Both the position numbers and the translations under genes were made by a program. Shown here piece after piece: positions 28,123 through 58,578 of a DNA stretch of 64,000 nt. Below the pieces are notes generated by a model. It made no database searches and was not told the DNA's origin. It worked only from the letters and a program-made list of their open reading frames with translations. The DNA comes from Cyanophora paradoxa CCMP329 (taxonomy: Eukaryota; Plantae; Glaucophyta): contig QPMI01000408.1 in the NCBI GenBank assembly GCA_004431415.1, positions 1,116,001 to 1,180,000 of the forward strand, given 5' to 3'. Each line of letters starts with the position of its first letter. The first letter of the stretch is position 1.

Positions 28123-28655
28123 TTTCGGGTCAACATGTAGTTCTCGGACCTCATCGAGAACGCCGCCTTTTGATATCAAAGTTAGCTTATTTGCATACTC
28201 GGCTTGCTTCGATTCGTTTCAAATTACAGCATATAGACAGCTCTAGAACAGATCTAGATCTAGAACTTGCAGATCTGACGCAGATTGAATGTTTAACACG
28301 GAGCCATGGTAGGCCACTGTAGATAAAATATTGCCTGCCTATCCGACTCCGTGATCGTGATTATAAGTTACTGCCTATCCATCGCCGTGAGCGTGATCAC
28401 TAGCCTATGCTATAAAGCTTGTGATACTATAATATTAATATCGATAGTACAGCTATCGCTAGCTGTAGCCAATGTCTCAGTGATAGCTATTTATTTTGTG
28501 ATTCAGTGATTGCTCTGTTGTCTTCTAATATTACTGACTACCGTGAGTGACCACCGTAGTACCCAAGTGCGCTCAGGAATCTGGGCGATAAACTAACACC
28601 AATAATCCAATTGCAAAAGTCTCCTGTACATTCACGACCGGGCCCTAGCTATAGC

Positions 28656-31600
28656 CTAGGCACGGAGGCCCGGGGGGGTATACGTGTATGGGCTGGCGCC
28701 GAAGGGGAGGGGCGGCCCCTGCGCCCCGTACCGCGTGAGCGCGACCTGGAGGGGGGGTACACGTCAGCCAAGACAAAAGAGAAAATGGGAAGGTGAAGGG
28801 GGAGGGGGTACCCAGGCGAAGAATAGGGCACTGGCGCCATCGATGGGCCCCCACAAGGCGAGCAGGGCGCCGCTGAGGGGCGAGGCCTGCGGGGGTACAG
28901 GTGACGATAGGAGAAGCAGGAGCAGAGAAATGGCGCCGCCCGGATTCGAACCTGGAAGATCGGGCCCAGGGAGTGATCCCTTACGAACAGAATCCACATA
29001 ACAACGAAGTACACCTGCACACGAAACCGAGGTCAGGGGGGTACGGGGCTTCCTGGGGGGTACGGCACCTTCTCGACGGCGAAGACGACGACGAGGAGGC
29101 GGACGTGGGGGTACGAGCGCGCCACGGCGGCGAACGCCAATCCGAAGAGGCCGATCAGCACGAAGCCTGCGGGGTCCGCGTTTGCTTAGCCTTCGGCTCC
29201 GCCTTTTTCGTCCGCCTCCGGGGGGAGAGGGGAGGGGGGGTACGGGGGGCACCGTGGGGGGAGTAGACGACGGGGGCGACAGCGGAGAGGACGGGGGGTT
29301 TCTCCAGGAGGAGGTACACCCCCGCCAGGCACGCGACCTGGGGGCGGGGGGTACGCGGGTCGGATTCCAGAGGGCGGGGGGGGAGCGGCGCCGAGCTGAA
29401 TCGAGCGCCCTAAAGTGGGCGCGTGCCAGGTTCGAGTTGAGTTTAATTAGGTTCTATGAAGCTGGAACTTAAAAGTTCCGAAAATATCCTATGAGCTTCA
29501 AGAGAAAGAGGGGGCGGACCAGGTTCGCGACGGCGCAGGCGTAGAAGCCGCCCGCCACGCCGCCGGCCGCCGCCTCCGCCGGGGCCGCCGCGGGGCCGGC
29601 GGGGGGCAGCGAGGCCGCGTGCAGCGGCGTCAGGCCCAGGCTGCGGCGGCGGGCGCGCGGGTCAGCCAACGCCGGATCTACGACCGAGGCCGCGCAACCG
29701 CGCGACGCCCTAAGCCGACGCTCTATCAGGTCCCACCGCTCTATTCCTGTACCCATATCGGAACCCAAGCCTCCGGCGTGGACCGCGGCTCGCCCCCTGC
29801 CGAGCGCACCTGTCGCGGGGGCCGTAGCCGGAGGAGGACGAGCGGGAGCCGGCGCTGTCGCGGGGGCCCTTGGAAGACCAGACCCCCGACGCGGCGGCCG
29901 AGGCCGGCGCCGGCGCCGGCGCCGGCGCCCCCCGCGCGTTCTGCGGCGAGGAGAGGGGCCGTTGGCCGACGAAGGGGAAGCGCGGGGAGGGAGGAAGGGG
30001 GGGGGGGTACGCACGTAGCCGCGCCCCGAGTTGAACTCGCCGCCCGACGAAGACGCGAACTCAACCGACGGGCTCCCCTGCGGCACGCATTCGGGAGGGG
30101 TACGGGATCGGGACGGGAGGGGGTACGGGGCGCGCCTGCTTGACGAAGGTCGTGACCGCCGCCTCCCACCGCTCCCACTGGCCCAGGTTCTGGGGGGTAC
30201 GCGAATTCGAAAGGAGGAGTGGGGCTGGAGGAGGGGGTACGGCGTACCTGCCAGCCGGGGATGTGGTACCGGGCGGCGTAGGTCTTGTACGCCCCAATGA
30301 CGACGTTGATCGCGATGATGACGAGGAGGCCCGCAACCTAAAGATAGCTCAGGGGAGGCTCGGGCGGGAGGGGTACGGCGATGCGCGCGCCGGCCAGAAC
30401 GGTCCGCCGCTGACGGGTACGAGGAGGAGGCCCGCGAAAAGCACGGACTGCGGGAAAGGGGCACCGGATTCGAAAAGGGGGTAGTGGCATGGGTTGGGAG
30501 GGGTACCAGGGTGTAGCGGCGGTCGTCGAGGATCTGGTACTTCACGAGGAAGAGGTAGAAGACCCGTACCCAGACGTAGATCTGAGGGGGGGGGTACGTG
30601 AGTCGCAGGCCGCATCGGCGAGTTGCGGGGGGGTACGTGGACGTGGATGAACATCTGAGGGGCGGGGGTCAGGCGGCTGGCGGCGGGGGGAGGAAGCGGC
30701 GCGGAGGGGTGTACTCACGGAGCGGAAGTAGCGCCAGTCGGAGGGGTGGAGGAGTACCCCCACGGCGGACAGCGCGTGGAACAGAATCACTTGAAGGTAC
30801 GCCGGGACCTTTTTTTTTGGGGGGGGGGGGTTAGGGATTACGGCGGCGGAAGGCCGTCGAGGGGGGTACGGCTCACGGTGATCCGCCGCTCACCCCACAC
30901 CGTCGGAGTCTGCTCCCGCGAAGGGACGAGCCTTCAGCGGAAGGGGGGGGGAGGGCGCGGGCGGGGCGGGGGGGGGGGGGGGGGGGCGCGGGGGGGGGGT
31001 AGGGGGGGAGCGCGCCATGACGAAGGAGGAGGGTACGTGGCCGAAGAGGGCGATGCCGGCGGCCCAGCAGGCGACCTGCCCGGGAGAGGGGGGAAGCTCA
31101 GATTCGGGCCACGAAGACATCCAGGCCAAGCGAGCGGCTCGGCGGCTGCCCACGGCGGCCCGATCCTTCGAGACCCGAACCCCGGACCCAAAAAACAGAC
31201 CTTGCGGATCATCGACCTTAAACAGAACTGTAGCGTGGCCACGCTGGCCTAGAAGAACCCTCACCCCACGGCTGCCTAAGTGGCTAGGCTGGCATCATGG
31301 GCAAAGCGCTAGACCCGCACCCGGACCCATAGAAAGACTCCCGCGGACCGACGGACCTTCTCGGAGGCCATGAACCAGGCGGCGACGCCGACGCCGATCT
31401 CGGCGATCCCGGAGGCGATGTGCAGCGCGATCGCCACGCGCAGGTACGTCGCCGCTGCGCCGGGCGGGCTGAGCGGAGACGGAGCGGGAGGGGAGGGGAG
31501 GGGGAGAGGCGCCGCTCGGGCACCTTTGAACTTCTGGTGCTGGGCTGCGGGCCGGGGAGCGCGCGCGCGGGCGAGGTCAGCGGGAGCGGCGCGCGGGCTC

Positions 31601-32187
31601 GGACGGCGGGCTCGGGCGGGCGGCTCGTCCGCGGGCGGGCGACGCACGGCGGAGGACGGAGAGGGGTATAACAGCGAGGTCCAGCGCCACGCACATCGCC
31701 GCCAGGATGTAGAAGCTGCGCGAAGCGAACGAAGCGGCGGGGCGATCAATTTAAATCCGCGCGGCCGGCCCGGCACTCTCTTGTGTGAAAGAGCGCTTTA
31801 GAATGACTAGGCAGCAGCGCCGGGAGGCTGGGCTTTGCGCCGCGGCCGTGCTGTGACCGGGCGCCGGCCGGCCGGCAGCCGGCTGGCTGCGCGGCCTCTC
31901 CGCACGGCTCTCGAACCGGCACAAGCACAAAGCCCGCAGGATGCGCCGAGAGGTGCGCGTGGCGGCTGTTCGTGCAACCGGCCGGACCGTCGGAGCGTCG
32001 GATGCAGCGGCGACCGCCATGCCACAGTGCCCATAGCCACCGCTTTGATCGGCTATAGTTCCCTCGCGAGAGGCGCCACGCACATGTGGCGCTCGTTGAG
32101 GCCGGACCAGTCCAGAACCGGCATGGCGGTCGGGTCGACGCCCTCCGGTCGAGCCCAGCGCGGGTCCGCTGCATCGAAGAGGCCCAT
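28656..32187 (-). CDS. Multi-pass membrane protein of unknown function; two hydrophobic modules joined by a low-complexity linker
   Basis: Spliced reading: MGLFDAADP...RHIFYILAAMCVALDLAVIPLSVLRPQHQKFKAATYLRVAIALHIASGIAEIGVGVAAWF...GHVPSSFVM-TPTVWG...VPAYLQVILFHALS...IYVWVRVFY...SVLFAGLLLVP. After the linker: FYACAVANLVACLAGV...GFVLIGLFGLAFAAVARSYPHVRLLVVVFAVEKVYFVVMW...LWGPIDGASALFFAWV...GLRA*. Some internal exons are uncertain. Confidence 0.75.
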
Positions 32188-32609
32188 ACTGTTGTTTGCG
32201 GCCGATCGCTCGATCGGAGGCCTGTAGCTAGGCCGGGCTTGCGCTGGCGGGTTTGCCGCGGTTAGTGCACGTGAGGGGTACAGGCGCGGAGGTACAGGCA
32301 TGCCGCAGAACTAGCTATAGTGCAGAACTACATATATACATGTACAGGCATGCCGCCGACAGCCGCGGCGCGCCGCGCGCGCGCGCGGGCGCCGGCGCCG
32401 GCTGTGATCAAAAGTCCCGCGCGATCTCGAGCTCTCTGTACGGTACGCCTCCGTACCACAGCACTACGTATACGTACGTGTATTGGAAGAGTTTTAAGCC
32501 TCGGGCGCCGGCGCCGGCCCCCCGCCTCCCCCCGCTAGCGCTAGCGGCGCAGTCGATGCCTAGCTTTGGGTACGGATCTCACTTTCAAGCTTCCGACGGC
32601 ACGCTGCCC

Positions 32610-35171
32610 CTACTTCTTGGCGCCCGGGTACGTCGCGGCGTCGAGCGGCGCGTGGGTGTACGCGCGGGCGCCCGATGCGAAGTCGCCCACCGTGTGGCCC
32701 TTCCCGTAGATCCTGGGCGCAGGCCCGTGAGTGAGGGGTACGGTAAACACCGAGTCAGTCCGGGGGTACACGAAGAAGAAGCAGGCACCGGTACTTGTAG
32801 ATGAGGAGGCCCTCGACGCCGACGGGCCCCCGCGCGTGCGTCTTGTTCGTGCTGATGCCCACCTCGGCCCCGAAGCCGTACCTGCACATGCGCCCGAGGG
32901 GAAGAAGGCGGGCGTGAGGCCGAGGACGAGGATGATTGGGGGGGGGGGGGGGAGGGGGGGGGGGGAGGCGCGGTCCGGGCCCTGCCACGCCTCCGCGCTG
33001 GCCTTAGTTCTGATTTGATCTGAGGGCCTTCGTGCGCCCCTAGAGCTGGGGCAATTCGCCGCGCGACGGCCTGTAGCCCGGCGCCCCCTCTCCGCCCACC
33101 CCCGCCTCCGTCTCGCCCTGGCTCGGCCCGCCCCGCCGCGGCGCGCGCACCGCTGGCCGTCGGCGAAGCGGGTGGAGCAGTTGTGGTAGACGCCGGCCGA
33201 GTCCACCCGCGACATGAAGAACTCCGCCCGCTCCGAGCTGCCGGCCCGGCGGGAGCGAGGGGCGGCGTGAGCGAGGGGCCGCGCAGGGGGGAGAAGAGGA
33301 GGAGAGGGGCGCGGCAGAAGCGAGGCGGCGTGGAGACGGGCGGGAGGAAGGGGGAGGGGCGAGGGGCGGGGGCGGGGGCGACCTGGGGGAGACGATGGAG
33401 TCGGTGTGGTGCGAGCCGTGCGCGTTGATGTGCGCCGCCGCCTCCTGCACGCCCCCCACCCCCCAGGTTAGTTCACGGGCGGGACGGGGGCGGAACGAGA
33501 GGGCCAGGCCCCAGGGTCCTCTAGGCGCCATAAGCCCCCGGGAGGGGCGGGGGGAGGGGCGGGGCCGGGGACGGGTACAGGAACGCGCCTGCACGGAGGC
33601 CACCGACTTGACCGCCATCACGTGGTCCAGAAACTCGAAATCGAAGTCCCCGTCCTGGAAGGGGGGTACGGTGTTAGAGAGGTGGGCGAAGGAAGGCTTG
33701 CGGGGGGCAGAAGTGCCTGGGCAGGCTTGGCGGGGAGCCCGGCCGCTTGGATCGCGGCCAGGCACTCGGGGTCCGCCCTCAGCTCGACCTTCGCAGCATG
33801 GAGAGCGGAGGCGACCTGGGGAAGGGGGGGTAGATGATTAATAGGAGGGAGGGGGTACGCGGAAGAAAGCGCCCACCTTGGGGAGGAGGGTGTTGAGCAG
33901 GGAGCGGTGGACGAGGAGGGTCTCCGCCGCGTTGCAGGCGGCGGGGTACTGCGTTTTCGCGTCCACGACGACCTTCGCCGGCAGATCGCCCAGCGCCTCC
34001 GCCCCTGCGGGAGGGGTACGCGTGGGCGAGGGGGTACAGCTCAGCGCGGGGAGGTGGTGTAAACGCGTACCCTCGTCGAGGTAGACGGAGCAGATGCCGT
34101 CGGCGTGGCCAAGCACGGGGATACGCGTATTGTCCTGCGGGGTACATGATAAGCCATCGAGGCGGTGCGGGTGAATTCAATGGGCGGGGTACGCGCCTGG
34201 ATGTAGCGGACGAGGGAGTTGGAGCCACGGGGGATGACGAGATCGATGTACCGGTCCAGGCCCAGGAGCGTCGCGATCTACTTCCGGATGGGCGGGGGTA
34301 CAGTGGAGCGGAGGGGGGTACGCGGACCTCCTCGCGGCCGTGGACGAGCTGGACGGCGTCGACGGGGAAGCCCTCGACGCGCGCGAGGCCCGCGCGGATC
34401 GCCGCGATGAGCGCCTGCGGCGAGAGCGTGAGCCGGATCGAGGGTCGGGTTCGGGGGTACACGCGCGCACGTCGTTGGACTTCTGCGCCTCCTTGCCGCC
34501 CTTGAGGATGACGGCGTTCGCGGACTTGATGGTCAGCGACGCGATCTGGACGGCCGCCTCCGGTCGAGCCTCGAAGATCATGCAGATGACTCCGATGGGG
34601 CACGAAACGCGGTACATGTCCAGGCCGTCCGAGAGCCGCGTCGACAGCGTGACCCTGCGCGCGCGGGACGCGAGGCGCGCTCGGCGCCCGAGGAGGAGGA
34701 GAAGGGGGAGGAGGCGCGCGCGCGCGCACTTCCCGACGGGATCTGCGAGCGCCTTGACCTCGTCGATGCCCTGCAGGACCGCCTCGAACTTGGGGCCCAC
34801 CAGGTCGAGCCGCTTGAGCAGCGCCGACGACATCTTCCCCGCCGCAACCTCCTTCTCCGCCGCGTCCTTGTCCGCCTTGTTCGCGGCCAGGATCGCATCC
34901 TTGCTGTCAATCAGCGCCTGCGCGCGCGCGGCGCGGCGGCCTCTCGTCAGACGCGCCGCCCAATGATCCCGACCCAGAGGCGAGGCCCGGGTGCCGCTCA
35001 GCTAGCCATTCAGGAGCTAGAGAGGCGGGAGGTGCGAGGGCGCGAGGCCGGGGCGCTCGCCTGCCGCACGGCCGCCAGCGCCGCATCCCGCTTCTCCGCC
35101 GAGCAGGCCGAGAGCTGCAGGGCCGCCTCCCGCGCGCGCTTCGCCAGCTCGACGGTCTCCTGGTGCGCCAT
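32610..35171 (-). CDS. proA: Gamma-glutamyl phosphate reductase (glutamate-5-semialdehyde dehydrogenase), stand-alone
   Basis: Family motifs are present across exons: [105 protein letters not shown]. Confidence 0.95.
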
Positions 35172-35347
35172 CCCACGAACAAGCCGCCTTTTCCGGGTAC
35201 GGCAATATTTGCGAGGGACAACGAGCCTCGCACGTCTCCCTTCCGGGCACACGCAGCGCTCCCAAGCTGAGCCGCAGCGTCCGATCCCACACGGAGCAGC
35301 TGCTCCGCCCCCGCTCCACGGACGGGTTCTCCGGCGGCGTACCGCCG
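35172..35347. promoter_or_regulatory. Probable bidirectional promoter (proA / KEA antiporter)
   Basis: The two divergent start codons are separated by only 176 bp. Confidence 0.55.
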
Positions 35348-38300
35348 ATGAACCCCCCGGCGGCCTTCGCGGCGGCGGCCGTAGCATCAGCTGCTGCGGC
35401 GTCGGCGCAGCTCTTCGCCTGCTCCCTCTCCACGCCACCGCCGCTGCCGCCGATCGGCGCGTGCCACCAGCACCTGCCAAGGCATGTACTGGGATCCAGT
35501 TCTCGGCCGACGGCTGCAGCAGGCGTTCGGAGCGCGTTGCAGCAGCGTGGCTTCTTCTGCTCCAACGGGGCTCTCGGCCGAAGCCCACAAGCGCAGCTGA
35601 CCCCGTCGCGACTCTTTGGGTATGGGCGGCGGGCATTCTTCGGCGACGCGCTGCCGACGCGCGCGGCGGCCGTGCCGCGGCCGCTCGGAGACGGCGGCTT
35701 CTCCGTCCAAGCGAGCCTGAAGAGCTTCAGCGAAGCGCTCGAGCTGCTGCTGGTGCCCCAACTTGGACCCCGGCATGCATGCGCGCGCGCGCGCTGACCG
35801 CCGGCTGCCTCGCAGACGAGCGTCATCGTTATCCCTCTTTTCAAGAAGATCAAGGTGATTCGCGAGCGCGCATGCACCGCACCGCGCGCCCCTCGAGCCG
35901 CCGGCGGGGCGCCTGCGCGCCCACCGAACCGGCCGACCGACCGACCTGATCTGGCGCGCCGGGCAGGTCTCGCCCGTGCTGGGATTCATTGCGGCTGGGA
36001 TCATTCTCGGCCCGCATGGGGAGAACTGGCTCCACGACTACAGGGACATCAACGAGTTCGCCGAGTTCGGCGTCCTCTTCCTCCTCTTCGAAATGGTTCC
36101 TTCCTTCCTTCCTTCCTTTCCTTCCTTCTCTTTCTTCCCTCGCTGACATGGGTACAGGGCCTGGAGCTCTCCGTTTCTCGCCTGAAGAAACTCGGGTCTG
36201 CCGTCTTCGGTCTGGGCACCGCCCAGGTCCGCTCACATTCATTCGCCGGAAGCAATATATATAGCTTTAAACTTGATCAGAGCCGGATGCCTCACCGCCG
36301 GCAATCGCGCAGGTCACAGTTACGACACTCGCCATCGCTGCGCTGGCGAAGCTGTTCGGCGGCGACTCCGTCAGCTACGTCGAGGCCCTCGTCATCGGTA
36401 CCCCTCTTCCCATCGCTCCCCCCCGCCTGGCTTCGCTCCGATTCTGATTTGATCCGCGCGCAGGCAACGCGCTCTCCCTCTCCTCCTCCGCCTTCGTTCT
36501 CCAGCTCCTCCGCGAGCGCGGCGAGCTCGGCGGAGAGTGCGTACCCCCCTGTGTCCTTCCCTCCTTCCTCGGGCTCTCCTGAACCCCCCGTCAGCTTCGG
36601 GCAGGCTTCGTTCGCCGTCCTGCTCCTGCAGGACATCGCCGTCGTACCCCTCCTCGTCGTCCTCCCCCTCCTCGGCACGGCAGACCTCTCCCACCCCCTC
36701 CTCGTCATCGCCTCGCTGGGGGTACCGGCCCTCAAAGCCTTCGGCGCCCTCGGTGCCGTCATCGCCGCCGGGCACTTCGGACTCGGCCGCGTCTTCCAGG
36801 TACCCCCCTTCCCTCCTGCTTCATGTACTCCCCCGCCTCTGAACCCCGTATCCCCAGGCCGTGTCGTCCTCTAAGAGCCAGGACGCGTTCATCGCCGCGA
36901 TCCTCCTCACCGTCCTCGGCATGGGGTACCTGACCGAGTTCATCGGACTCAGGTACCCCCCCCCCCCCCCTAGGCATTCACACCCTCGCCGCTTCTTACC
37001 TGAGTGTCGTACCCCAGCGACACCCTCGGCGCATTCCTGGCGGGAGTCCTCCTCTCCGAGACCCAGTTCCGGTACCCTACCCCATCTCCTCCCTCCTCAC
37101 CCGCTCCTCCGCACCGTACCCCCCCTGACCTCTCTCCTTCCCCCCTACCAGGTACCAGATCGAGGCGGACATCTCCCCCGCCCGGGGCCTCCTCCTCGCA
37201 CTCTTCTTCATGGCGCGCCCCTCTACCCCCCACGCGAACTGTACCCCCCGCTCTCCCTAACCTCCTCCCATCTCCCGTGCAGACCGTTGGCTTCAACGTG
37301 GACCTTCAGTTCGCGATGGAGAACGCCCCCATCGTCGCCGCGCTCATCCTCTGGCTCGTCGGCGTCAAGGCCCGCCCCGCCCCTTTCTTTCTTTCTTTTC
37401 CCTCCTTTCTTTTCCTTTTCTGATCGCTTTCGCCGCAGGCGTCCATCACCTCGGCGCTGGCGGCGACGGCGGGCGGCCTGCGCCCGGGCCCCGCCGTCCG
37501 CACGGGCCTGCTCCTCTCCCAGGCGACCCTTCCTCCGCCTCCCTCCCTCTACCCCCCTCTCATCCTAACCCCCTACCCCCTGCAGGGCGGAGAGTTCAGC
37601 TTCGTCATCTTCGCGCTGGCGAAGCAGCTCGGCATCCTCCCCGAGGACGTCAACAACGTGCGCGCGCACGTACCCCCCTCCGGAACCATGTACCCCGTAC
37701 CGCCTCTCCTCCTACCGCCCCTCTCCTTCTACCCATCCCTCCCTCTCTTCCCCCCTCCGCCTCCTGCGCCCCTGACTCCCGCCCCTCCCGCGCAGCTGCT
37801 GATCGTGGTGGTGGCGCTCTCGATGGCGCTCACGCCGGTGCTCGCCGCCGCCGGCGCCGCTGCCTCCAAGGCCCTCGAGCAGGTACCCCCGCCCCGCCCC
37901 GCCCCCCCGCCCCGCCCCTCGCCCCCGTCGTTGCACGGCCGACGGGCCGGCCGCCCGCCCCGCCCGCCCCCACCGCCCCCGCCCCTACTCGTTGCCGCCC
38001 CGCGGCCCCGGGCTCGCCGCCCGCCTCCGCCCCTCGCCGCTGACTCCAGGCGGGCAGTACGGGCAGGAGGCGACGGGGACGGCGCCGGCGCCCATCAAGG
38101 CCGCCGAGGACGCCATCGTCATCTGCGGGTCCGTGCGCTGTTAGATAGATAGATAGATAGAGACTTGGGTAGGCCCTCCAGCAAACAGGCCTCTCTCGGC
38201 CTCCCTAACTAGATAGATAGATATATTATGCATGCTATAGATATCGGCGGGTATCTATCCATGTTATATGTATCTAGCCATCTGCGGGTGCGCCGCATCG

Positions 38301-40148
38301 CTTCCTCCAGCGAGTTAGTTATATAGCGAGTTAACATCGATAGATAGATAGATAGATAGATAGATAGACAGATAAATAGATAGATAGATAGATAGATAAC
38401 ATCGCATTCTCCAGCTAGTCAGATAGATAGAGACTTCGGTCTGACTGGCTGGCTGACCGTCTGCCTGCAGGTTCGGGCCGGTGGGGCAGACGGTGGGGCG
38501 GCTGCTGACGGAGAGCCAGCGGGCGTGGGTCGCCGTCGAGATCGACCCGGACGTCGTCCGCTCGGTCCGCCCCCGCCGCCCGCCCGCAAGGGCCCCGCCC
38601 ACTCTTCTTCCTTCTTCTTCTCTCCGCCCAGCGCCCCGCCCCCTCTTTTCCTCCTTCGCCCCCCTTTCTATCGCCCGGCCCCGCCCCCGCCTCCTCCGCT
38701 CTCGCCGCCTTGACGCACCCTCCCTCCCCCCCTCCCTCCCTCCCCCCCGCCCGCCCCGCAGGCGCAGGAGTCGGGCCTGCCCGTCCTCTTCGGCGACGCC
38801 TGCCGCCCCCAGGCGCGCCCCGTTTCGCTTTCCTTTGCTACGCTACGCTACGCTTTGCTTCTTCAACGCTGAGGCCCCGCCCCGCCCCGCCCCTCAGGTG
38901 TTCGCGGCGGCGGGGGTGAAGCGCCCGGCGGCGGTCGTCGTGACGATGCGCTCCTACAAGCGCACCCTCCGCCTCTGCATCGCCCTCCGCTCGGTAGGCG
39001 TCGCCCCCTCCCCAAGTAAAGGCGTACCCTGACGCCGCCCCGTGTAAAGGCGTACCCGACGCTGGCGATCTTCGTGCGGGCGCGCACGCGGCGGCAGCAG
39101 CGCGAGCTGGAGGCCGCCGGCGCCACCACCTGGTGCGGATCCCGCCTGGCCGGGGCCGGGGCACGGGGCCGGGGCCGAGGGCGGGCGCTTGCGCGGGGCC
39201 GGGCGGGGCGCGGGGCCCGGCCCCGCCAAGCTGATATGCGCAATCCTGCGAGCGTTCCTGCGAGTTGCTCTCTCGGCAAAGCTAAACGAGCCTAACGATC
39301 GGGCACCCAGAAGCTCCTTTAGCTCCTGCAAGCTAATCTCAGCTTCGAGTCTTCGACGACGCCCCCCGCTGACGCTGACAACTCGGCAGCGTGCCAGAGC
39401 TGCTGGAGGGCTCGCTGCAGCTGGGCGGCGCCGTGCTGGAGGCGGACGGGGCGGACCCCGCCCTCGTCGCCGGCGTCCTCGCCGCCCGCCGCGAGCAGGA
39501 GGGCCTCCTCTCCCGCTCCCCCCGCGTCCGCCCTCCCCTCCCTTCCTTGCTTTAGAGTTGTTGCTTTAGAGCGCCGCCGTCCGCTTAGGCTTAGGCTAGC
39601 TCAGGCTAGCGCCCTGCCTTGCCTTCTTCTTGGCTTGGGCTAGCTTGGTAGTAGATCAAGATGGCTTTAGAGCGCCGCTTTCCGCTAGACCTCCTCGCCC
39701 GCTCCCCCCGCGTCCGCCCTCTCCTCCCTTGCTTGGCTTGCTTTCTTGCCTGAAGCTAGCTAGCCTTCCCACTTGCCTTCTTGCCCGCCTGCTCGCTAAC
39801 TTCTGGCGCGGCAGGGACCCCGCCCTTACTCCAAGCCCGAGTCCGGCGTGACGCCGTACCCCGACCCCGAGGCCGAGCAGGACATCACGGAGGACTGCCC
39901 TACCCCCACCCCCACCCCGAGCCCCGACCCGGGTACGCCAAAACAGCGACCAGTCTTCCTCTTCAGTCGCAGGCCGCTGCTCCTTTTCTCACGCGCGAGG
40001 CGCAGAGCCGCAGCCGGCGCAGGCTGAGGGCCTCGGGGAGGGCCCGGAGGGGACGGCCCCCAGAGTCGTGAACCATGTCGTACCCGTCCAGCGGCCCCGC
40101 CGGCGGGCCAGCCCCCAGCCGCCGGCCCCGCCGCCGGGCTCGTCCTGA
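35348..40148 (+). CDS. Plastid-targeted K+/H+ efflux antiporter (CPA2 KEA/KefC family, KEA3-like architecture) with C-terminal KTN/TrkA-N domain
   Basis: Long Ser/Ala/Arg-rich transit peptide (MNPPAAF...). CPA2 motifs: SPVLGFIAAGIILGP, AEFGVLFLLFEMGLELS, LSLSSSAFVLQLLRERGE, AVLLLQDIAVVPLL, LGAFLAGVLLSET, SQGGEFSFVIFA. KTN motifs: IVICGFGPVGQTVGRLL, VLFGDA, VPELLEGSLQLG. Confidence 0.93.
38143..38430 (+). repeat. Interrupted (GATA)n microsatellite inside a KEA intron
   Basis: Runs of agat/gata, the longest at 38340-38398. Confidence 0.9.
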
Positions 40149-40862
40149 GCGGGCCCCTGCATATGCATGCACAGCCCCGCACCCTTTTTTCTCTCTCTCC
40201 TCTCCTGTACAGCACTGAGATCTTCAGATCCTCGCGAGACGGGCAGGGCAGCGGTTAGATCCATCCCCCTTCGTATAAGACATGTATCACCACCACCGTT
40301 TTTTAACGATTTTGTTTTTGAATGCTAGTTACGCGTGTGTTCCTAGAGCACTGTTAAAAAGAGGTAGATTGTACGTGTGCGATGAGAACAGAATCTCAAG
40401 GCAACTAAACAGCCTGTCACGGCGTGGCCGTTCATCCCAGATGGTGCAGCCTCGTTTAGATAGACGAACTCGAAGCTGATTCTCCCTGGCGAAATGTCCA
40501 ATGGACATTGTGGCTCAGCTGCACGCCCCATCTAAACAACCGTCTCAAGAGGTGGCGACGTACATGGCCCAGCCCCCGTCTAAACGACGAGGTTGTACTA
40601 AAAAAGGAAGAGAACACGCAGCCGCCCGCTTGCGCCATCCCGCTGCCGCGTCCGTTGAGAATCCAGACACGCGCACGCCAGCGCCCAGCGCTAACGGTCC
40701 AGCCCCGCGAAGAAGACCGCAAGGAGAGAAAGCATATCTGAAATTGAGAAGCAAGTATTATGCGGTGTCCTAAACCTTTACAAGCCCATCCTGTTTGCAG
40801 CAAGTGCACTACCGCTGCAACAAAATCGCAGGGGAAAAAGCGGGGACCAGAGGAGGAAGGGA

Positions 40863-41607
40863 TTACTGGAGGCCAACGGACACGTTCTTCTTGCCGCTGC
40901 GGAGGAGGAGCGTGAGGCGCGGCGTGGAGCGGATGGGCCTCTGCTGCGCGGGAATGGCACGCGAACCTGACGAGCTCGACCTTGAAGATGCGGCCGCCCG
41001 CCTTCTGGATGCGCTGCTGCTCACGGTACCTGTGCAAGGAAAGCGGGCGCGGGTCAGACGCGTCCGGTGATGGCGTTCGGCCGACGCTAATCAACCCAGA
41101 TCCCCGCGCCAATCACCCGCCGCCGCAACGTCCGCGACTCACCAGTTCGAGAACGGGACGAGCTTGGTGTTGTAGACGTTGAAGAGCTGCGAAAGGCCCG
41201 TCGTCAGCGACGTCGGTGAGTCACCATGCGAAATGGTCAAACCTTGCGGCCAGCCTCGAGGCGCTGGGAAGTCTGGGGCAGGCAGAAGGTGATCTTGAAC
41301 ATGCGGTTGTCACCAGCAATCGGGCTGGAGCTGGGGTTGGTGATCCGCTTGATGGCCGAGCCGGAGGTGTCGGCACGGATCTGCGTAACCGCCCGTCAGA
41401 CGGCAGTTTCTCCGGCTCTCACGCATATTCTAGCGTCCTACAACAGCTCTGTGCGGCCGCTGGCCGGCTCGGACGGCTGGACGCCCGCACCTCGAAGGCG
41501 GCCTCCTGCTGGGGCGCAGCCGGGCAGATGGGGCTGGCGGCGAAGAAGCCGACCTTCTGCGAGCCCGAGAAGGTGCGGAGACCGGTGGCGGCGACGAACG
41601 AGGCCAT
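40863..41607 (-). CDS. apcC: Phycobilisome allophycocyanin core linker Lc7.8 precursor (nuclear-encoded, 5 coding exons, plastid transit peptide)
   Basis: Spliced protein: MASFVAATG...AAFE|IRADTSGSAIKRITNPSSSPIAGDNRMFKITFCLPQTSQRLEAGRK|LFNVYNTKLVPFSNW|YREQQRIQKAGGRIFKVELVS|GKKNVSVGLQ*. This matches the CpcD/ApcC signature RMFKIT...TKLVPYxNWFREQQRIQKxGGKIVKVEL. Confidence 0.93.
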
Positions 41608-41689
41608 GTTTCGAGGCGGGATGTGAGAACAGGCGAACTGCCGCGACCGAGTCGACCTAGGTGATTGCGATTTGGGGGGGCGAGTCAGC

Positions 41690-42650
41690 AGGGGGGTGCC
41701 TGAAATTCACGCTGGAGTGCTTCGGCGCATCGAATTCGAAAGCCGCTGATCGTGAGCGCTAGCATAGCAGCGGGCACAGCGCAGCACTTCAGCGCAGCAC
41801 TTAGGCGGCTGCGCAGGCCCCGCTTCGGGAGGCCCCGCCGAGCGGCAGGCGCTGAGCGGCAGCGGCGGCGAGCTAGAGCGCCAAGGCGCCAAGCTAGAGC
41901 GAGAGGCGAAGGAAATCCCAAAGGCTTGGCCGAACGAAAGGCTTGGCCCAGAGGTGAGCGAAGGAAGGTTTACATGCGCGCCCTCGCGCCCCCGCGCCGG
42001 GCCGATCGGCCCGTGCACCGCGCCGGCTTCTCAGCGGAACTTGGTGCGCTCTGCAACGCTCTGCAACGCTTGCCTTGGTGCGCGTCCGTGGCCATGGCCA
42101 CGCTAACGACCGCATGCGCATGCGCAGCAGTATTTCGCAGCGATGCGCCACAGCGATGCGCCGGTGTCGCCGGATTGCAAAATTGAACTCCTCATCGCAG
42201 TGTCGACCCGTGCACCGCATACTCGTGTCGAGCTTTCCCTTGGTGCGCGTCCCATGGCCAGCTGCACCATGCGCCAGCCGGCCCGAGCTTGGCAAGCGCA
42301 CTTCGTCAGCGAGCTTCGAGAGAGGGCCAGCAGCCTCTGTCGACGTCGGCTTGCTTCTCGGCCGTCCTACCGTCCGACGGTCCGGCCGTCCAGCGGCCAG
42401 CACGATTCCGCAGCCGGTTAACATTCAGCTTAAACTTCCAACGCCGCCGTCGTGTGCACTGGGCCAGGTGCGGCCTTGCTTCTCGTTCCTCTCAGGGATT
42501 GCGCATGCGCGCGCAGGCCTAGGCGGGATTCCCTCGGTCTGTCGCAGGCCCGGAGGCGAGCCACCGGCGCCCCCCCCCGGCGACCGTCGGACATGTACAG
42601 CGTGATCATGACTGGATCCGGAGCTAGTAATAGTGTTTGCGCGTGTCGAT
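41690..42650 (+). other. Putative spliced transcript (small gene or lncRNA) divergent from apcC; start codon not identified
   Basis: A series of plausible introns (gtgagc/gtgcgc/gtccgg/gtgcgg ... cag) near 41752-41816, 41953-42034, 42078-42200, 42243-42309, 42379-42428 and 42468-42516. No recognisable protein family. Confidence 0.35.
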
Positions 42651-42946
42651 GTCCTGCCGCCCTATACATAGCTACCTCCTGCCCCGTCCCCCCACCGTGG
42701 CACCGGCGCCACGTGCACCAGCCCGTTCGATATACGTATACGTATACTCGAGGCCAGCTGCACTGAGTGTGCAGGGCCGGGGGAGTGAAGCTAACCGCGG
42801 CCGGGGGGGGAGGGGGGGGGGGAGTCAACCTCGAGCTCGGCATTCGGTCGAAATTTCGATCGACATCGGGACCGTGATCGGGTTCGATCGATCTCGACGA
42901 TCTATTGCTTTGAATTCGCTGCAGCTGCCGGCGCCAGGCTGCCCGC

Positions 42947-43483
42947 ATGGATGCGCCAGCGGCTTTCCTGCCGGGCGACCGCGTCGTCCTCTCCGGCCTC
43001 TCTTCGGGTGCGGGCTCGCGCCTCAACGGGCGCTTTGGCGTCGTGCTTGCCGCGAGCGCATCTGCCGAGGCCGCCGAGGCGATCCGCAGGGGCCGCGTGC
43101 CAATTCAACTCGATCCCGAGCCCGGCGCGCAACCGACCGTCGCAGCAGAGCTCGAAACCGTGATGACATCGATCAGCGTCAAGCACGAAAATCTGCAGCG
43201 CTCCGCAGCGCGTTCGATCGCGAGTTCAGCCAGCGCGAGCTCGAGCTCGAGCGCTAGCGCTCGAGCGACATGGAAGCCGCGCATGGAGGAGCTATTCGAG
43301 CTTATGAGTAGCGACGAAAGCCCCATTTTCACACCTGGTAGTGAAATCTCCATTTCGGTCTGGCAAAAAACGCTGTCCAGCATGCAGCAGCGGGAGGCAA
43401 CATGGGAGGAGGCTATAGCTGCAGATAAGGCCGATTTTCAATCGAAGCTAGCGACGGTGCGGCGCTCGCGAGGCCAAATGTGA
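42947..43483 (+). CDS. Intronless hypothetical protein with N-terminal SH3/KOW-like beta domain
   Basis: ATG-initiated 178-aa ORF. The pattern PGDRVVLSGL...LNGRFGVV...GRVPIQLD...ISVKHENL is, from recall, recurrent in algal/protist proteins. Confidence 0.65.
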   Translation: MDAPAAFLPGDRVVLSGLSSGAGSRLNGRFGVVLAASASAEAAEAIRRGRVPIQLDPEPGAQPTVAAELETVMTSISVKHENLQRSAARSIASSASASSSSSASARATWKPRMEELFELMSSDESPIFTPGSEISISVWQKTLSSMQQREATWEEAIAADKADFQSKLATVRRSRGQM

Positions 43484-43794
43484 CCGTCCGATCGCGACCA
43501 TATGCATCAGCCCGAGCAACATGATGCAGCTGCAGCTGAGTACTGCAGCGCTAGCTGACTCATGATCATATGCATATGCATGAGTGCTTGCAATTTTTCA
43601 GGCTGTGACGCGCCGCATGCGCAGCGCATTGTTTCGCATACGTATGCAGATGTAATTATAACCGTGAACGTGCACGTGAGGCGCCCTGCAAACCGCAATG
43701 CCACAGAGCTCGAGGGCCCGGCTTGGCCCAGCCAGATCTAGAGGGCGCCGTCCGATCAGCTGCTGGTGCGGGGTTCCGAAGTTCACCGGCCGGG

Positions 43795-46700
43795 CTACTG
43801 GGCGGGTGTGATCTGCGCCATCGTCGACTGGATGTCCTGGCAGTACCTGCCCGGAGGTAGGGGTACGTGAGCCGAGGAGAAGGGTGCGGAATCGGGGGGG
43901 CGGGGGGGTAGGGGCTCACTTCTGGACGACGAACGACGTCGCCTCGCTCCGCTGCAGCCGCGCGTCCAGCTCCCTTATCTGCCCGGGGAGGAATGAGCGG
44001 GGGGTACGGGGTTCGAGGAGGGGGGTACGTCTCGCCTTGGCGACGGCGTCGAGGAGGCAGGCGCGGTCGCGCTCGATCCGCGCCTCGTGCAGCTGCGGGG
44101 GGTACGGTATCAGAGAAGAGGGGGAGAAGGGAGAGGTCGTTCAGGACCGGACCTGCTGGCGCCACGCGGCGAGGGCGGTGGCGGCGGCGCGCCGGTCGCG
44201 CCCCGCGGCGGTCAGGCCCGCCAGATGCTCCCTCCTCCGCGCCCGCCCCACGCTGCGCGACGAAAGTCGAGCGTAAGGTCATCTCGTCTTCTCTCTTCCA
44301 GCGGAGCGCACGCACCAGTGGAGGCGCCAGGCGGCCCAGGCGCGCCGCAGCTCCCCGCGGGCCTCGAGCGCCGCGCAGCGAGCGGCCAGCGCCCCGCGCA
44401 CCTCCGCCAGGCGGCCCCGCAGCACCCGCCGCTCCGCGTCCACCTGCGAACGAAGCGCGGCGGTTTCAACGAGAATAGAATGGGGAAAGGGGAGGGAGGG
44501 TACGCGGATTCGCACCTCGACGAGCCGGTCGTCGCTCGCGTCCCTCTCGTCCCGTACCCGGGCTGCGAAGGCGGCCGGGCGGGCGGGGGCGATCTCAGGC
44601 CCCTTCAAACGGCGAAGAGAGGGGGGGGGTACGCTCGCACCGAGGTCGCGCTCGGCGCCGGCGAGGCGGTCCCTGAGGCGGGCGGCCTCCTCCGCCCCGC
44701 GGGCGCGGCCCCGCTCGAGACCGGCCCCGCGCCACTCCAGCAGCGCCTCCTTCGCCGCCTGCGCGAGGGAGCGGAGTTGGGGCCGCCGGGCCCGGTCGGT
44801 TAGATGACAGGGCGGAGGCTCGGGGCGTCCCGCGCCCCCTCTTGGAGCCGTCCACTCTAGTCGGGGCTCTAGTTCGCGGCTCTCTTAGTTGAATCCGATT
44901 CGAAAGGGGGCGCACGGAGCGGGCGGCGCGGCGCTCGCCCCAGGCGAGGGCGCGGTCGAGGAGGGCGTAGAGGTGGTGCCTCCCCTCCACCTCCGCCGCC
45001 CCCCGCCGCCACAGCGCCATCGCCTGTCGGAAGGGTGAGGCGCGTGGGAGGGGGAGAGGGGGAGGTACGGGGGGAGGCGGGGGGAGGGGGGTACACCTTC
45101 GCGAGGGCGTCCCGGTCGCGCCGCGCCCCGCGGGCCTCCGCCTCCGCCCGCCGCGCCTGCCCCGCAGGCTCAGGAGAGGAAGAGGAAGAAGAGAGGACGC
45201 GGGATCGTGAACTAAAGTTCTCCGTGCGCGCAATGTAAAGGAAGCGCCTTCTCAAGCAAAGCTCTAATGCAGAGAAGCCTTGAAGGCTCTAAGTCTCGAT
45301 TTAGAATCGAGCTCTCTCACGGAAAAAGCAGCTAGGAGCCCAGGATCCCAAAGCTGCCTCAAGGTGCGACGCGCAAGATCCTTAAAGATCGAACGTAAAG
45401 ATCTAAAGTTCGGAGCGAAGTGTAGAAAGCGAACCTTGAGGTTCTCGAGGGCGGAGCGCCAGGCGCCGAGCGCCCCCGCCTCCGCGCTCGCCTGCCGCCT
45501 GGGGGGGGAGAGAGGGGGGGTGAGAGGGGCGGACGGGGGGGAAGGGGAGGGGATGGGGAGGGGTACCGGAGGCTCAGGACGCCGATGGCGCGGTACTGGC
45601 GGCTCCGCGTCTCCGCCACGTCCCGCCACGCCTGGTGGGGGGATGGGGGGGAGGGGAGGCGTCAGGGGGGTACAAGGCGCGTGGCTGGCTCCCGCTAGAC
45701 GACGGCCCCGGCTTTGGCGGGGTACGGCTAGCTAGACGCCAACCCAGGTACAGAGAGAGGCTAGCCCTCGGTTTCGGGGGGAAACAAAGGTTAGAGAGTG
45801 CAGAGGCTAGCCTCGCCCGACCGGAGCCGAGCCGCCGGACCCGCCTAGTCCGTTTGTGGGAGCGGCTGCGGGGCGCGCGCACCCGGAGGACGGAGGCGGC
45901 GCGGCTGAGGGAGCGCGCCACGTGCGCGCGGGCCACGGCGCGCCGGTTGCGGGCCCGCCGCCGCGCCCACGCGAGCCAACAGCGCAGCGCCGCGCGCGAG
46001 CGCGCCGCCTCGCGCCGCGCGCGGAGGACGAGCGCCGCGTGCCGCTCGGCGGAGGAGGGGCCCAGCTCCGCGCGGCGCGCCCAGGCGCGGAAGGCGGCCG
46101 CCAGCGCCCGCGCCCCGCGCCGCGCCGCGAGGCGCCCCGCCGCCGCCTCGCGCGCGCGGGCCTCGCCGGCCGCCGCGCGCCACGCCGCGAGCGCGGCCGC
46201 AGCCGCGCGCGCCCTCTCCCCCGCGCGCTCCTCCCGCGCCGCGCGCGCCTCGGCGGCCCACGCCGCGAAGCACGCCCGCCGGGCCCCGCGGGCCCGCTCC
46301 TTTTCGACGAGGTCGGCGGCGCGGGCGCGGGCGGCCTCGAGGGCGGCCCGCCGCGCCGCCCTCGCCTCCTCCAGCGCCCCCGCGTCCGCCACCAGCTGTG
46401 CCTGGACCTGCCGCGAGCAGAGCAGAGAAGAGAGCTAGTGGTAAGCTCAAACGTCGAAGCGAGCGAGGAGAGGTGGTGGATTGGAAGGAAGCAGAGCAGG
46501 ACAGGGGGGAGATACGGTCTAAAGGAGAGACGAGAAGCGTCTAAGAGACGTCTAAACTCATCTAGAGCATCTCAAGGAAAAGTTTGGGCAAAGGCTCGCC
46601 TGGCCGCAGAGGCGCTCGGCGACCTCGAGGCGCCGCCGGAGCTCCCCCGCCTCTTGTCTCGCCCGCCCCGCCTCTTCGTTCGCCTCGGCCAGCTGCCCCC

Positions 46701-49700
46701 GCGCGAGCGCGAGGGCCCCCCGCAGGCCCGCCGCCTCCTCCTCCGCCGCCGCCGCCCGCGCCGCCAGCGCCGCCGCCGCGTCCGAGCGCGCCCCGTCGAA
46801 GAGCCGCCGCTCGAGCTGCGGACAGAGGTTAGGCGAGAGGGGCGAGGGGGGGGGTACAGTAAACGCGCCTCGAGGGCCTCGCGCTGGCAGTCGACGAGCT
46901 GGCGGTACGCGGCCGCGTGCGCGCGCGCCGCCCGAAGCAGCCGCGAGTCGTGCGGGCTCGCCCCGCGCCCGGCCCGGGGGAGGCCGGGGCCGGCCTCTCT
47001 GCCGAGTCGGCCCGCATGGCGGCCTTCAAAAGGGACCGCCTGAGGGCGCCCGAGGCGGAGCCCTCCAGGGCGGCGCGGACTCCCCGCAGGGAGTCGCGGG
47101 CTCGGTCCCACGCGGCCGCGGGGTCCTCGCCCCCGCCCGCCGCCGCCCGCTCGAGGGCCTCGACGCAGGCCGCCGCCTCCTCCAGCGTCCGCTCAAGCTG
47201 CCAGAGCTAAGATCAGTTTCAGCTTTTCTCTCTCTAGAGGAGAGTAGCTCTACCTTGGGCGACGGGGAGCGGGAGCGGCCGCGGGCGGCGGCGGCGGCGC
47301 CGGCTCCGCCCGCGGGCCGGCGGCCTCCAGCAGGAGCCTTAGCGTCGGGACGCGCTCTCCCGGCCGCAGGGGCGAGGCCGGGCCCGAGGGCGGGCCCGCC
47401 CGTATCGGCGAGATCGCCCGCCGCTGCCCCGCCGGCCGCCCCGCCGAGGAGGGCGCCGAGGGGGGTACGACGAACGACGCGTCCGGCTGCGGGGGCTCCG
47501 GGAATCCGTCGTCGTCGTCGCCGCCGTCCTCCGCGTCGAAGGCGTACCCGTACCCCCCGTCGGCATCGTCCCCCGGATCCCGCCACCCGGCGCCGCCGCC
47601 GGCGCCGCCGCCTGCGGACGCAGCCAGCGCCGAGCCGACGCGCTGCCTTAAGGACGCAGCTGCCGCCGCCGAGGTCGAGGCCGGAGGCGACGGCGAGGGG
47701 GAGGGGCCGAAGAGGGGGTACGCCCGCCCGGGGCTCCCCGCCGAGGACACGAAGGAGGCCTGAGGGGGCGGAAGGCCGCCGCCCGCGTCGGTACCCCCCG
47801 GGGAGATGGGTTCGGGCTCCTCCAGGGCCAGTCCGGGCCGGGCGCGCCCGGCGGCGGCCCGCTGGCGCCTGAGGACCTCGCGGAGGCGCTTGGAGGGGGT
47901 AGTGGGATCCTCGAGCCGCTCGGGCTCGGGGTCCAGGGGTAGACGCTCGGCCGCGATTTCCTCCAAGGAGGCAGGCCGGGGGGGAGCCGGGGGGGCGGGG
48001 AGGAAGCCCGAGGCGGGGGCGGAGGGAGGGGAAGGGGAGCGGGCCGGGGGAGGGGGAGGGGGAGGGGAGGGGGAGGGGGCATCGTGGGAGGCGGCGGGAA
48101 GGAGGAGGGGAGCTCCCCTCGGAGCGCCCTGAGCCTCTGAGCGAACTGCGAGGAAACTGAGCCCCAAAGGGGGGACGCGAACGGGTCCGGAAAGGGGGGT
48201 ACCTTGAGCGTGAGGAGGGACTCGTCCGCCTCGCCCCTCCCGCACGGCGGCCGCGCGTGCGCGAGCAGAGTCGCCTCGAAGGGGGGCGTCAGCCTGCGGG
48301 GGGTACGCCTTTCAGCGGGTAGGGTGGGGGGGTGAAGGGTCGTGAGGGGTACGCACGCGGGGCGGAGGACGTGGGTCAGCTTCGAGTCGCGGTAGGGGAC
48401 GGGCACGGGCTCGGCGGGGGGCGGCGGGGGAGGGGACAGGGGGGGTACGACGGGCCCCAGGAGGGTTGCCAGTACCCCCGCGAGGGCGGAGAAGGCGCGG
48501 GCGACGCGCTGGCGTGCGGCCGGCGGCGCCGGCGGCGGACGGGAGACGCCGGGCGGGTCCAGGGCGGATGCTTCCCCCTCCCGGGCCTGACGCGGATCAG
48601 GGGGGGGGAGAAATGGCGGGGGGTACGCGCACCAGCTCGGCGTCGGCGAGGCGGGCGACAGCGAGGACGGCGGAGCCCTCCGGCTCCAGTCGGATCGTGT
48701 ACACCACGTGGCAGAGGCGCGCCCGCTCCGCCCCGCCCGAGATCGACCGCGCCGCCCGCACCCTGCGCGGCGAAGCTCAAGACGCGCTAGAATCCCGTAA
48801 CCCAGGACCGAGGGGGTACCGTTCCATGAGCTCCTGCACGTCGGACGGGGAGGCCACGCGGTGCTGGGACTGCGGCGATTTCGGCGCAGTCAACCGGAGG
48901 GGCCGCGGGAGGGAGGGGGGGGGCGGACGAGGCCCTGGACGGCGCCCGAGGCGGAGACGCGCAGGTGCGTGTTGCGGGGGCGGCATGCGTCGCTGAGCAC
49001 CTCACCGTCCGCAGCGCTCACTGCGAAGGGCTGATCAGCGCTAGCGGCGCGGCGAAACAGCGGCGCAGCGGCGGCGCGCCTGCGGAGACGACGACCGTGG
49101 CGTCGGGATCGACCGCCGCCGCGTCGATCAGCTCGCACAGCATCCTCGGGACCTGTGCCGGCGTCGGCGCCGCGGGGGGGCGGAGGCGGCGGGGGCGCAG
49201 CGCACGAGGCCCCGGCCGTCCGCATCCGGGTCGACGCCCTCGACCGGCGAGCCCTCCGCCGAGTGCGTCTTGCCGCTGCCGCTCTCGCCGTACACCAGCA
49301 CGGCGCTGCTCACGCCCTGCGAGGCGCGTGAGGCGCGGGGCGCGGAGCTGGCGCGCGGAGTGAAGGGCGCGGCCGGGAGCGACCTGCAGCAGGAGGTCCA
49401 CAGCGCGCGCGCCGACCTCCTCGTACACATCGCGCTGCGTGCTCCGCTCGCCGAGCACCTGCGAGGCGCCTGGCTGAGCGCTGGCGCCGACTGGCGCGGG
49501 AGCAGCCTGGCAGCGGACCCGGTCAAATCCGAAGACGCGCTCCCCGCGGTACGACTTGTCCGGCCACACTACAGCGCCGTCTGTCGTTGCGAACGAGTCC
49601 GCGGCCGGCTCGTAGACTGGCCTGTCGAAGGGCGGGAGTTAGCCAGGAGCGGCGGGCGCGCTCGGCGAGGCGCAAGGGGTTTCTCTGACCCTCTTCGAAA

Positions 49701-49733
49701 GCGGACAACCGTCCGCAAGGCAGCCAGCTCCAT
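43795..49733 (-). CDS. Divergent kinesin-like protein (N-terminal motor, Pro-rich linker, coiled coil and Sfi1-like tail); true start may lie up to ~300 bp further upstream
   Basis: Motor-domain motifs: LRTVVRFR, RVFGFDRVLGERSTQRDVY, P-loop YGESGSGKTH, RGLVPR, VPYRDSKLTHVLR, ESLLTLKFA. The tail has repeated (F/L)xxW motifs and ends ...AQITPAQ*. Confidence 0.8.
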
Positions 49734-58322: not shown

Positions 58323-58578
58323 GCGTGCGGCGGGCCCCCGTCCCCCTTTCTGTTTGTTAAGTAAGTCCCGCGGGGTACCCCCCCGCGGTTGCTTGTATGT
58401 AGGGTTAGTTTTACGTTCTCCCATCCTCTTATTTCGAGTGTGTCCTGATCCTTAGTAGGGGTAATTACATCGTTCATTCGCGATTTCGATCGAACACGCT
58501 GCACACGGCATGCGCACGCCCGCCCGCTTAAAAGCAAGCGAGCACAGCTTCCAATCCGCGCCGCCTTCGCAACTAGAG

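Follow-up and report, generated by a model that had tools for sequence, protein, structure and literature searches.

A GTACCCC word in the distal introns of conserved Cyanophora paradoxa genes, possibly a splicing signal

Introduction

McCullough and Berget are credited with showing that G triplets act as intronic splicing enhancers in short GC-rich vertebrate introns, and the IMEter of Rose, Korf and colleagues reportedly captures the distance-dependent intron composition behind intron-mediated enhancement in plants. Introns of germline genes in Caenorhabditis elegans carry periodic A/T clusters (PATCs). Here we describe a short intronic word, GTACCCC, found in a 64,000-nucleotide stretch of the genome of the glaucophyte Cyanophora paradoxa CCMP329 (GenBank assembly GCA_004431415.1, contig QPMI01000408.1, positions 1,116,001 to 1,180,000 of the forward strand). 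This whole stretch is called the window below, and positions are counted from its first letter. GTACCCC looks like a selected short cis-word of the intron-dense body in a class of conserved Cyanophora genes.

In the Cyanophora genome a gene has on average 9.2 introns, whose mean length is 86 bp (PMC6704402). Enzymatic methyl sequencing (EM-seq) of C. paradoxa gave methylation levels of 32% for CpG, 0.73% for CHG and 0.53% for CHH, the last two near the non-conversion rate; the species has no transcription-linked gene-body methylation, and some CpG methylation builds up toward the ends of expressed genes (Sarre et al. 2025, PMC12344493). GTACCCC is not described in the genome paper (PMC6704402) or in other searchable literature, where a search for the word matched primers only.

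Results

Between positions 28620 and 31040, GTAC occurs 33 times, whereas base composition predicts 6.2 copies and a first-order Markov model 7.6, and 46% of the TA steps in this segment fall within GTAC. The initial annotation of the window, which had counted about 30 copies by eye against roughly 7 expected, was therefore right about this density. It had also described the nearly intronless giant gene at positions 1-28000 as low in GTAC. We found that this gene indeed lacks any build-up, but that its density is ordinary (38 copies against 36-43 expected) and not below expectation.

We analyzed the word in 67 introns of four genes, all in this one window: a gene for a membrane protein, proA, a gene for a KEA-type K+/H+ antiporter and a kinesin-like gene (Table 1). 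Their splice sites are those of predicted models, of which two reproduce EukProt proteins exactly, one is a EukProt model with its last two exons reset from homologues, and one was curated by hand. An ab initio predictor was unstable and prone to put donors at GTAC; it served only as a guide and as the source of models for uncurated genes. Introns were divided into proximal and distal ones at a gene-specific boundary, defined as the first intron with GTACCC and measured as distance from the ATG.

An unbiased k-mer scan of the distal introns ranked GTACCCC first among all 7-mers, with 46 copies where models of order 1 and order 2 predict 1.4 and 8.0, distributed over 34 of the 46 distal introns in the scan set. 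The reverse word, GGGGTAC, was absent from the same introns, in agreement with the earlier statement that sense-strand GTACCCC is the main form. Intronic GTAC is followed by CCC in 91-96% of cases, though the distal introns are only 47% C, and the word is mostly preceded by C (72%) or T (23%), giving a consensus of a pyrimidine, GTAC and three to ten C. The prefix GTA precedes 35% of the C-runs in distal introns and none of those in proximal introns. Distal introns contain 12.4 GTAC per kb, compared with 5.5 per kb in distal exons and 2-6.5 per kb in the 3' flanks of the membrane-protein and kinesin genes; in these two flanks we saw no general GTAC enrichment of the kind that 3' untranslated regions (UTRs) might carry. 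The word was also said to recur at 62365, and two copies are present there, in an intron-like stretch of a putative gene model.

The first word-bearing intron begins 1311 nt after the ATG in the membrane-protein gene, 701 nt in proA, 1050 nt in KEA and 914 nt in the kinesin-like gene. Before the boundary so defined, none of 18 introns carries GTACCC, whereas 39 of the 49 beyond it do (Fisher 1.4e-9). The annotation had called the word rare in the first ~0.7-1 kb of these genes and dense further on; this contrast is real, but it does not extend to all distal introns or to all genes. Introns that lie far from the gene start and lack the word occur in the last 2.2 kb of KEA, in the tail of the giant gene and in the gene at 55980-58458, some of these being ab initio models. 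Intron length is not the cause of the contrast, because six proximal kinesin introns measure 53-68 nt yet are wordless (median lengths of proximal and distal introns are 72 and 66 nt), and neither is C content, because proximal and distal introns are equally C-rich (47% against 48%).

The word zone in KEA stops at an intron of ~340 nt (38140-38450) between the antiporter and C-terminal parts of the gene, which is AT-richer, contains (GATA)n microsatellites and differs from the tiny C-rich introns upstream of it. GTAC also occurs within 110 nt upstream of the ATG in all four genes (35339, 35197, 32278/32292 and 49764), though it is otherwise rare near gene starts; random chance would produce this with a probability of ~0.01, a rough value since the pattern was noticed post hoc, and these copies might represent a promoter or 5' UTR element.

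The copies are not scattered evenly over the introns. Half of them begin in the first 11 nt, the first fifth of the intron holds 24 of 47, and nine of 47 begin at +1, where they form the donor. A second group is found 9-17 nt upstream of the acceptor, where the word immediately follows a branch-like CTRAC (CTCAC, CTGAC or CTAAC). In other eukaryotes, U-rich tracts occupy these places in the intron and normally help U1 and U2AF. The introns that bear the word are C-rich and 50-90 nt long, and paired words 19-25 nt apart within one intron are common. We considered and rejected a U12-type donor motif: apart from the nine copies at +1, the word is found at +5 to +21 or close to the 3' end, and two copies in one intron are frequent.

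Donors that start with GTAC are found only in distal introns (12 of 49, against 0 of 18 proximal ones). To this extent the proposed distal shift of donors from GTGCG to GTACC or GTACG is borne out, but GTGCG is still the commonest distal pentamer (13 of 49), followed by GTACC (10) and GCGCG (5). GC donors (GCGCG and similar) are present in 11 of the 67 curated introns. Separately, three exons open with GTAC right after the acceptor AG, namely proA exon 12 (32881), KEA exon 10 (37152) and kinesin exon 22 (43846), where ~0.3 would be expected.

The word is also enriched in coding sequence. Codon statistics were run on the joined coding sequence of the models, and expectations were taken from shuffles that preserve both the encoded protein and the codon usage of the zone. 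Distal exons contain 33 GTAC against 19.1 expected (z = 4.3), and proximal exons 6 against 4.7. The distal excess is present in all three codon phases (10 against 3.7, 2 against 0.2 and 21 against 15.3), so that several kinds of substitution converge on the word, which one context-specific mutation would not do; an excess made by silent substitutions of several kinds points to selection and not to one mutation type. Of the valine codons in distal exons, GTA accounts for 10 of the 40 that stand before C and for 1 of the other 94 (Fisher 2e-5), whereas the giant gene shows no such effect (5 of 131 before C, 29 of 454 otherwise). The claim that valine becomes GTA before C thus holds, and the sites given for it in KEA (36644 and 36722) and in a carrier gene (~54085) are real.

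Both orientations of the word contribute to the exonic excess. Among 382 testable hexamers in distal exons, GGGTAC ranks first (9 against 1.9 expected) and GTACCC fifth (9 against 2.7). We repeated the count with the kinesin gene left out, since its low-complexity exons might contain unannotated introns, and still found 6 GTACCC against 1.9 and 4 GGGTAC against 0.9 (P = 0.003). Long distal exons carry the GTAC excess as well. A palindromic restriction-modification-type site would have a symmetric context on both strands; the context of GTAC is asymmetric in introns, with a pyrimidine before and CCC after it, and in exons both orientations are enriched.

Table 1. Genes, word zones and single sites of GTAC and GTACCCC in the window
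Feature	Position	Strand	Details
Membrane-protein gene	28659..32187	-	21 exons, 547 amino acids; EukProt tig00020553_g10757.t1 (P0121) reproduced exactly, GT/GC-AG introns
Membrane-protein gene, introns 1-6 (proximal)	30910..32083	-	up to 1.28 kb from ATG; zero GTAC; include a 69-nt and a very C-rich 106-nt intron
Membrane-protein gene, word zone, introns 7-20	28746..30876	-	GTACCC in 12 of 14, often twice; within the first 15 nt of the intron and 11-30 nt upstream of the acceptor
proA (glutamate-5-semialdehyde dehydrogenase)	32610..35171	-	13 exons; EukProt tig00020553_g10759.t1 (P0001), Pfam PF00171
proA, word zone	32713..34470	-	word in introns 3-9 and 12; none in introns 1-2 (34655-35060) or long introns 10-11
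KEA-type K+/H+ antiporter gene	35348..38128, gene runs on to ~40.3 kb	+	hand-curated exons 1-15, frame-consistent
KEA, word zone	36398..38057	+	word in introns 5-10, 13 and 14; GTACCC at the start of five; introns 1-4 (35753-36312) wordless
KEA, words in exon 7	36644..36726	+	GTA-CCC (Val-Pro, conserved motif) at 36644; GGGGGTACC (Gly-Val-Pro) at 36722
Kinesin-like gene	43798..49733	-	22 exons, 1173 amino acids; P0122 reproduced exactly
Kinesin-like gene, introns 1-6	48870..49689	-	each 53-68 nt, C-rich, without GTAC
Kinesin-like gene, word zone	43847..48819	-	GTACCC in introns 7-10, 12, 14, 16, 17 and 19-21
Carrier gene exon	54081..54100	-	two Val GTA codons, each followed by C; gene model ab initio only
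Intron-like stretch of the window's last gene	62365..62410	+	two GTACCCC; ~2 kb past ATG; putative gene model

The gene models differ in how they were obtained. The membrane protein (P0121) has no Pfam family, while the kinesin motor domain of P0122 is recognized with E = 2.6e-25. P0001 aligns to 35171-33043 on the minus strand at 100% identity and is exact for proA exons 1-11; its C-terminus (32610-33150) is spurious, and homologues put the true last two exons at 32881-32789 and 32712-32610. The closest relatives of the proA product in a protein search are Planctomycetota and metagenome proteins (61-63% identity), with eukaryotic homologues behind them (54-60%); all 12 introns of the gene look lineage-specific. 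Exon boundaries of KEA were picked from knowledge of the family, and its exon 3 is a match to Pfam Na_H_Exchanger.

Several other features of the window lie outside the introns of these genes. A near-perfect palindrome at 58368-58388, CCGCGGGG-TA-CCCCCCCGCGG, has GTAC at its centre and contains both orientations of the word outside any intron; the genes on either side of it, 55980-58458 (+) and 60158-58880 (-), are convergent. ProA and the membrane-protein gene are separated by a 420-nt spacer that contains eight GTAC (19 per kb; 32278-32474) amid short palindromes (GCATGC, ACGTATACGTACGT) and a repeated CGGCATGCCTGTAC unit. A long tandem array of GC-rich 60-nt units (also 119, 179 and 239 nt) at 60476-61886 is apparently located within the first long exon of the window's last gene, where it would encode Ala/Pro/Gln-rich repeats. 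In the giant gene, a 660-bp stretch is present twice in identical form (12439-13098 and 16053-16712), the second copy crossing the point at which the gene's two long open reading frames are broken apart. Either a repeat within the gene or a duplication introduced in assembly could account for the pair.

Discussion

We tentatively put first the reading that GTACCCC is a splicing signal read at the RNA level, well short of certainty. A C-run or pyrimidine-binding splicing factor would recognize the word on nascent pre-mRNA and would help to define tiny introns whose splice sites are weak and GC-drifted. Such a factor may act only once RNA polymerase is past the promoter-proximal phase, and the lack of the word in the first kilobase would follow from this. 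This reading is supported by the presence of the word where U-rich tracts usually sit, by the 12 GTAC donors, by the 46:0 ratio of sense to antisense words in introns and by the low GTAC density in the 3' flanks of the membrane-protein and kinesin genes. As expected of a splicing enhancer, the word is intron-enriched on the RNA-sense strand and clustered near splice sites. Distal introns share nothing else, their best pairwise matches being no longer than 27 nt, and the word is favoured, weakly but significantly, at silent sites of the neighbouring exons.

Several points weigh against a splicing signal. A reader of RNA does not account for antisense GGGTAC as the top hexamer of distal exons, and a splicing enhancer would be expected to show no enrichment of its reverse complement. 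By inspection, the exonic copies have no obvious preference for exon ends. The boundary is tied to the gene start without a ready reason, and the lack of the word in some genes that do have tiny distal introns is left unexplained. We identified no trans factor or complementary small nuclear RNA, an Rfam search of the window returned no RNA family, and the splice sites themselves rest on predicted models.

A DNA-level mark is a close rival of an RNA-level signal, and we consider it possible but somewhat unlikely. In this case GTACCC in either orientation would dock a DNA-binding or chromatin protein, or a modification enzyme, in a gene-body domain that lies past the promoter-proximal one. The word would be sense-only in introns since these must stay pyrimidine-rich, and its copies would lie at intron ends since C-runs are already there. 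The enrichment of both orientations at silent sites, which includes long distal exons, argues for such a mark. The absence of antisense copies from introns says little against it, because composition predicts only 0.06-0.3 of them in these G-poor introns; the sole antisense copy in a distal intron is in intron 15 of the membrane-protein gene, which stands alone as markedly G-rich. The boundary at 0.7-1.3 kb fits the post-TSS (transcription start site) domains of trimethylated histone H3 lysine 4 (H3K4me3) and N6-methyladenine (6mA), which are under 1 kb wide across eukaryotes (PMC12695648). A start-sparing domain exists in C. paradoxa itself, where CpG methylation accumulates to the gene end in expressed genes (PMC12344493), and the C that precedes 72% of intronic words gives them a CpG. 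The restriction of the word to some genes also suits a mark on DNA.

A DNA-level mark fits less well with the few or no words in the unconstrained 3' flanks of the membrane-protein and kinesin genes. GTAC shows no 10-bp or nucleosome-scale spacing, and we rejected phasing of either kind (Rayleigh p > 0.25 at periods 10.0-11.0; no peaks in the histogram of distances from 0 to 400 nt). The exon counts are small and unannotated introns may hide in some kinesin 'exons', the window offered no candidate for the enzyme or binding protein, and clustering at splicing-relevant positions together with the GTAC donors suits splicing more directly. The initial annotation had offered, as its second choice, selection for a GTAC site read by a methylase or DNA-binding protein; the enrichment of both orientations in exons lends this some weight. 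In its strongest form, to which we would give no more than a minority chance, GTACCC would be an orientation-free gene-body code on double-stranded DNA that marks conserved expressed host genes and not foreign-looking or lineage-specific ones. Such a code might be tied to the 3'-accumulating CpG methylation of expressed genes.

We consider it improbable that the word is an unselected by-product of intron origin or growth, in which a donor-proximal GTACCCC was copied by repair or template switching within and between introns and into exons. Massive intron gain in Cyanophora, where bacterial-derived genes have 13-27 introns (PMC6704402), provides a setting for such copying, and the frequent word pairs within one intron are compatible with it. 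None of the 12 proA introns is common to two chytrids or Symbiodinium; however, intron sharing in proA cannot tell old from new introns, because none of the 12 is shared and the proA of Sphaeroforma has no introns. Copying would not explain the sharp exclusion of the word from proximal introns, which are equally lineage-specific, and the copies in exons came about by base substitution, in all three phases of the codon. Nor is there similarity beyond the word and its C-run: all-against-all blastn of 47 distal introns found longest matches of 27 nt, mostly word and C-run, and we therefore rejected an introner family. Target-site duplication at intron borders was rejected likewise, the next exon opening with GTAC in only one of the 12 introns that start with it.

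The explanation first proposed for the build-up, deamination of methylcytosine in a non-CpG (GpC) context that changed GCAC to GTAC, and hence GTGC to GTAC on the other strand, while sparing the gene start, is very improbable on the present data. It agrees with the confinement of GTAC donors to distal introns, with a somewhat lower share of GTG-C valine codons in distal exons (22%, against 38% in proximal ones) and with the existence of a start-sparing methylation gradient, though this gradient is at CpG (PMC12344493). However, the presumed precursors are not depleted in distal exons (GCAC 19 against 18.1 expected, z = +0.3; GTGC 16 against 20.4, z = -1.3), the depleted word there being GTCC (31 against 46.7). 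The precursor 7-mers are also too rare in proximal introns, where 1684 nt contain one GTGCCCC, no GCACCCC and four GCGCCCC, and more than 90% of intronic GTAC have a CCC 3' flank. GC content at third codon positions (GC3) stays at 0.85-1.0 along the genes, flat or rising with distance from the start; there is therefore no regional A/T drift at silent sites, and a gradient of GC content or biased gene conversion was rejected on the same flat profile. CpG observed/expected goes from 1.13 in proximal to 0.96 in distal introns, but decay of CpG was rejected as its cause, TpG and CpA observed/expected falling and not rising in distal introns. EM-seq, finally, puts non-CpG methylation at background (PMC12344493).

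That a low-order Markov composition of C-rich introns generates the word, which the annotation had named as an outcome fatal to its proposal, can hardly be credited: a second-order model does give 24 of the 33 GTAC in 28620-31040, but its expectation is high because the word itself raises the counts of GTA and TAC, the 7-mer is still 6-fold above second-order and 33-fold above first-order expectation, proximal introns of equal C content are wordless, and the exonic excess was judged with amino acids and codon usage held fixed.

If GTACCCC is a splicing signal, it illustrates how the U-rich tracts of intron definition can be replaced in a genome that is very GC-rich and dense in introns, and it would imply that the cell treats introns close to the gene start in another way than those further on. 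If the word is read on DNA, it would be a gene-body mark of a new kind, encoded in the sequence. In both cases, a single word with so sharp a boundary is a simple, testable handle, and public RNA-seq, EM-seq and nanopore data exist for the species.

Comparison with described systems shows a partial likeness in each case. Introner elements of Micromonas, Aureococcus and others are lineage-specific, sense-oriented sequences shared by many short introns, as GTACCCC is, but the Cyanophora introns lack full-length similarity (matches of at most 27 nt) and target-site duplications; no introners in Cyanophora are reported in the searchable literature. PATCs, too, are a non-coding feature that fills the introns of some genes only and is probably read at the DNA level. 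They consist of A/T runs with a 10-bp period, whereas the Cyanophora feature is one exact word without periodicity. The C. paradoxa methylome offers a start-sparing state, with CpG methylation that rises to the gene end in expressed genes, but this methylation is confined to CpG and is mainly repressive, its description draws no connection to GTAC, and the window sequence bears no signature of decay (Sarre et al. 2025, PMC12344493).

The IMEter signal resembles the present case in that the k-mer content of introns shifts ~1 kb from the gene start. The plant signal, however, is proximal and raises expression, while the Cyanophora word marks distal introns and is absent proximally. G-triplet enhancers share with GTACCCC the use of short sense-strand run-type words near both ends of small introns, several per intron, which back weak splice sites. 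The Cyanophora word differs from them in being a C run with an obligatory GTA prefix, in being absent from the first kilobase and limited to some genes, and in occurring in exons in both orientations.

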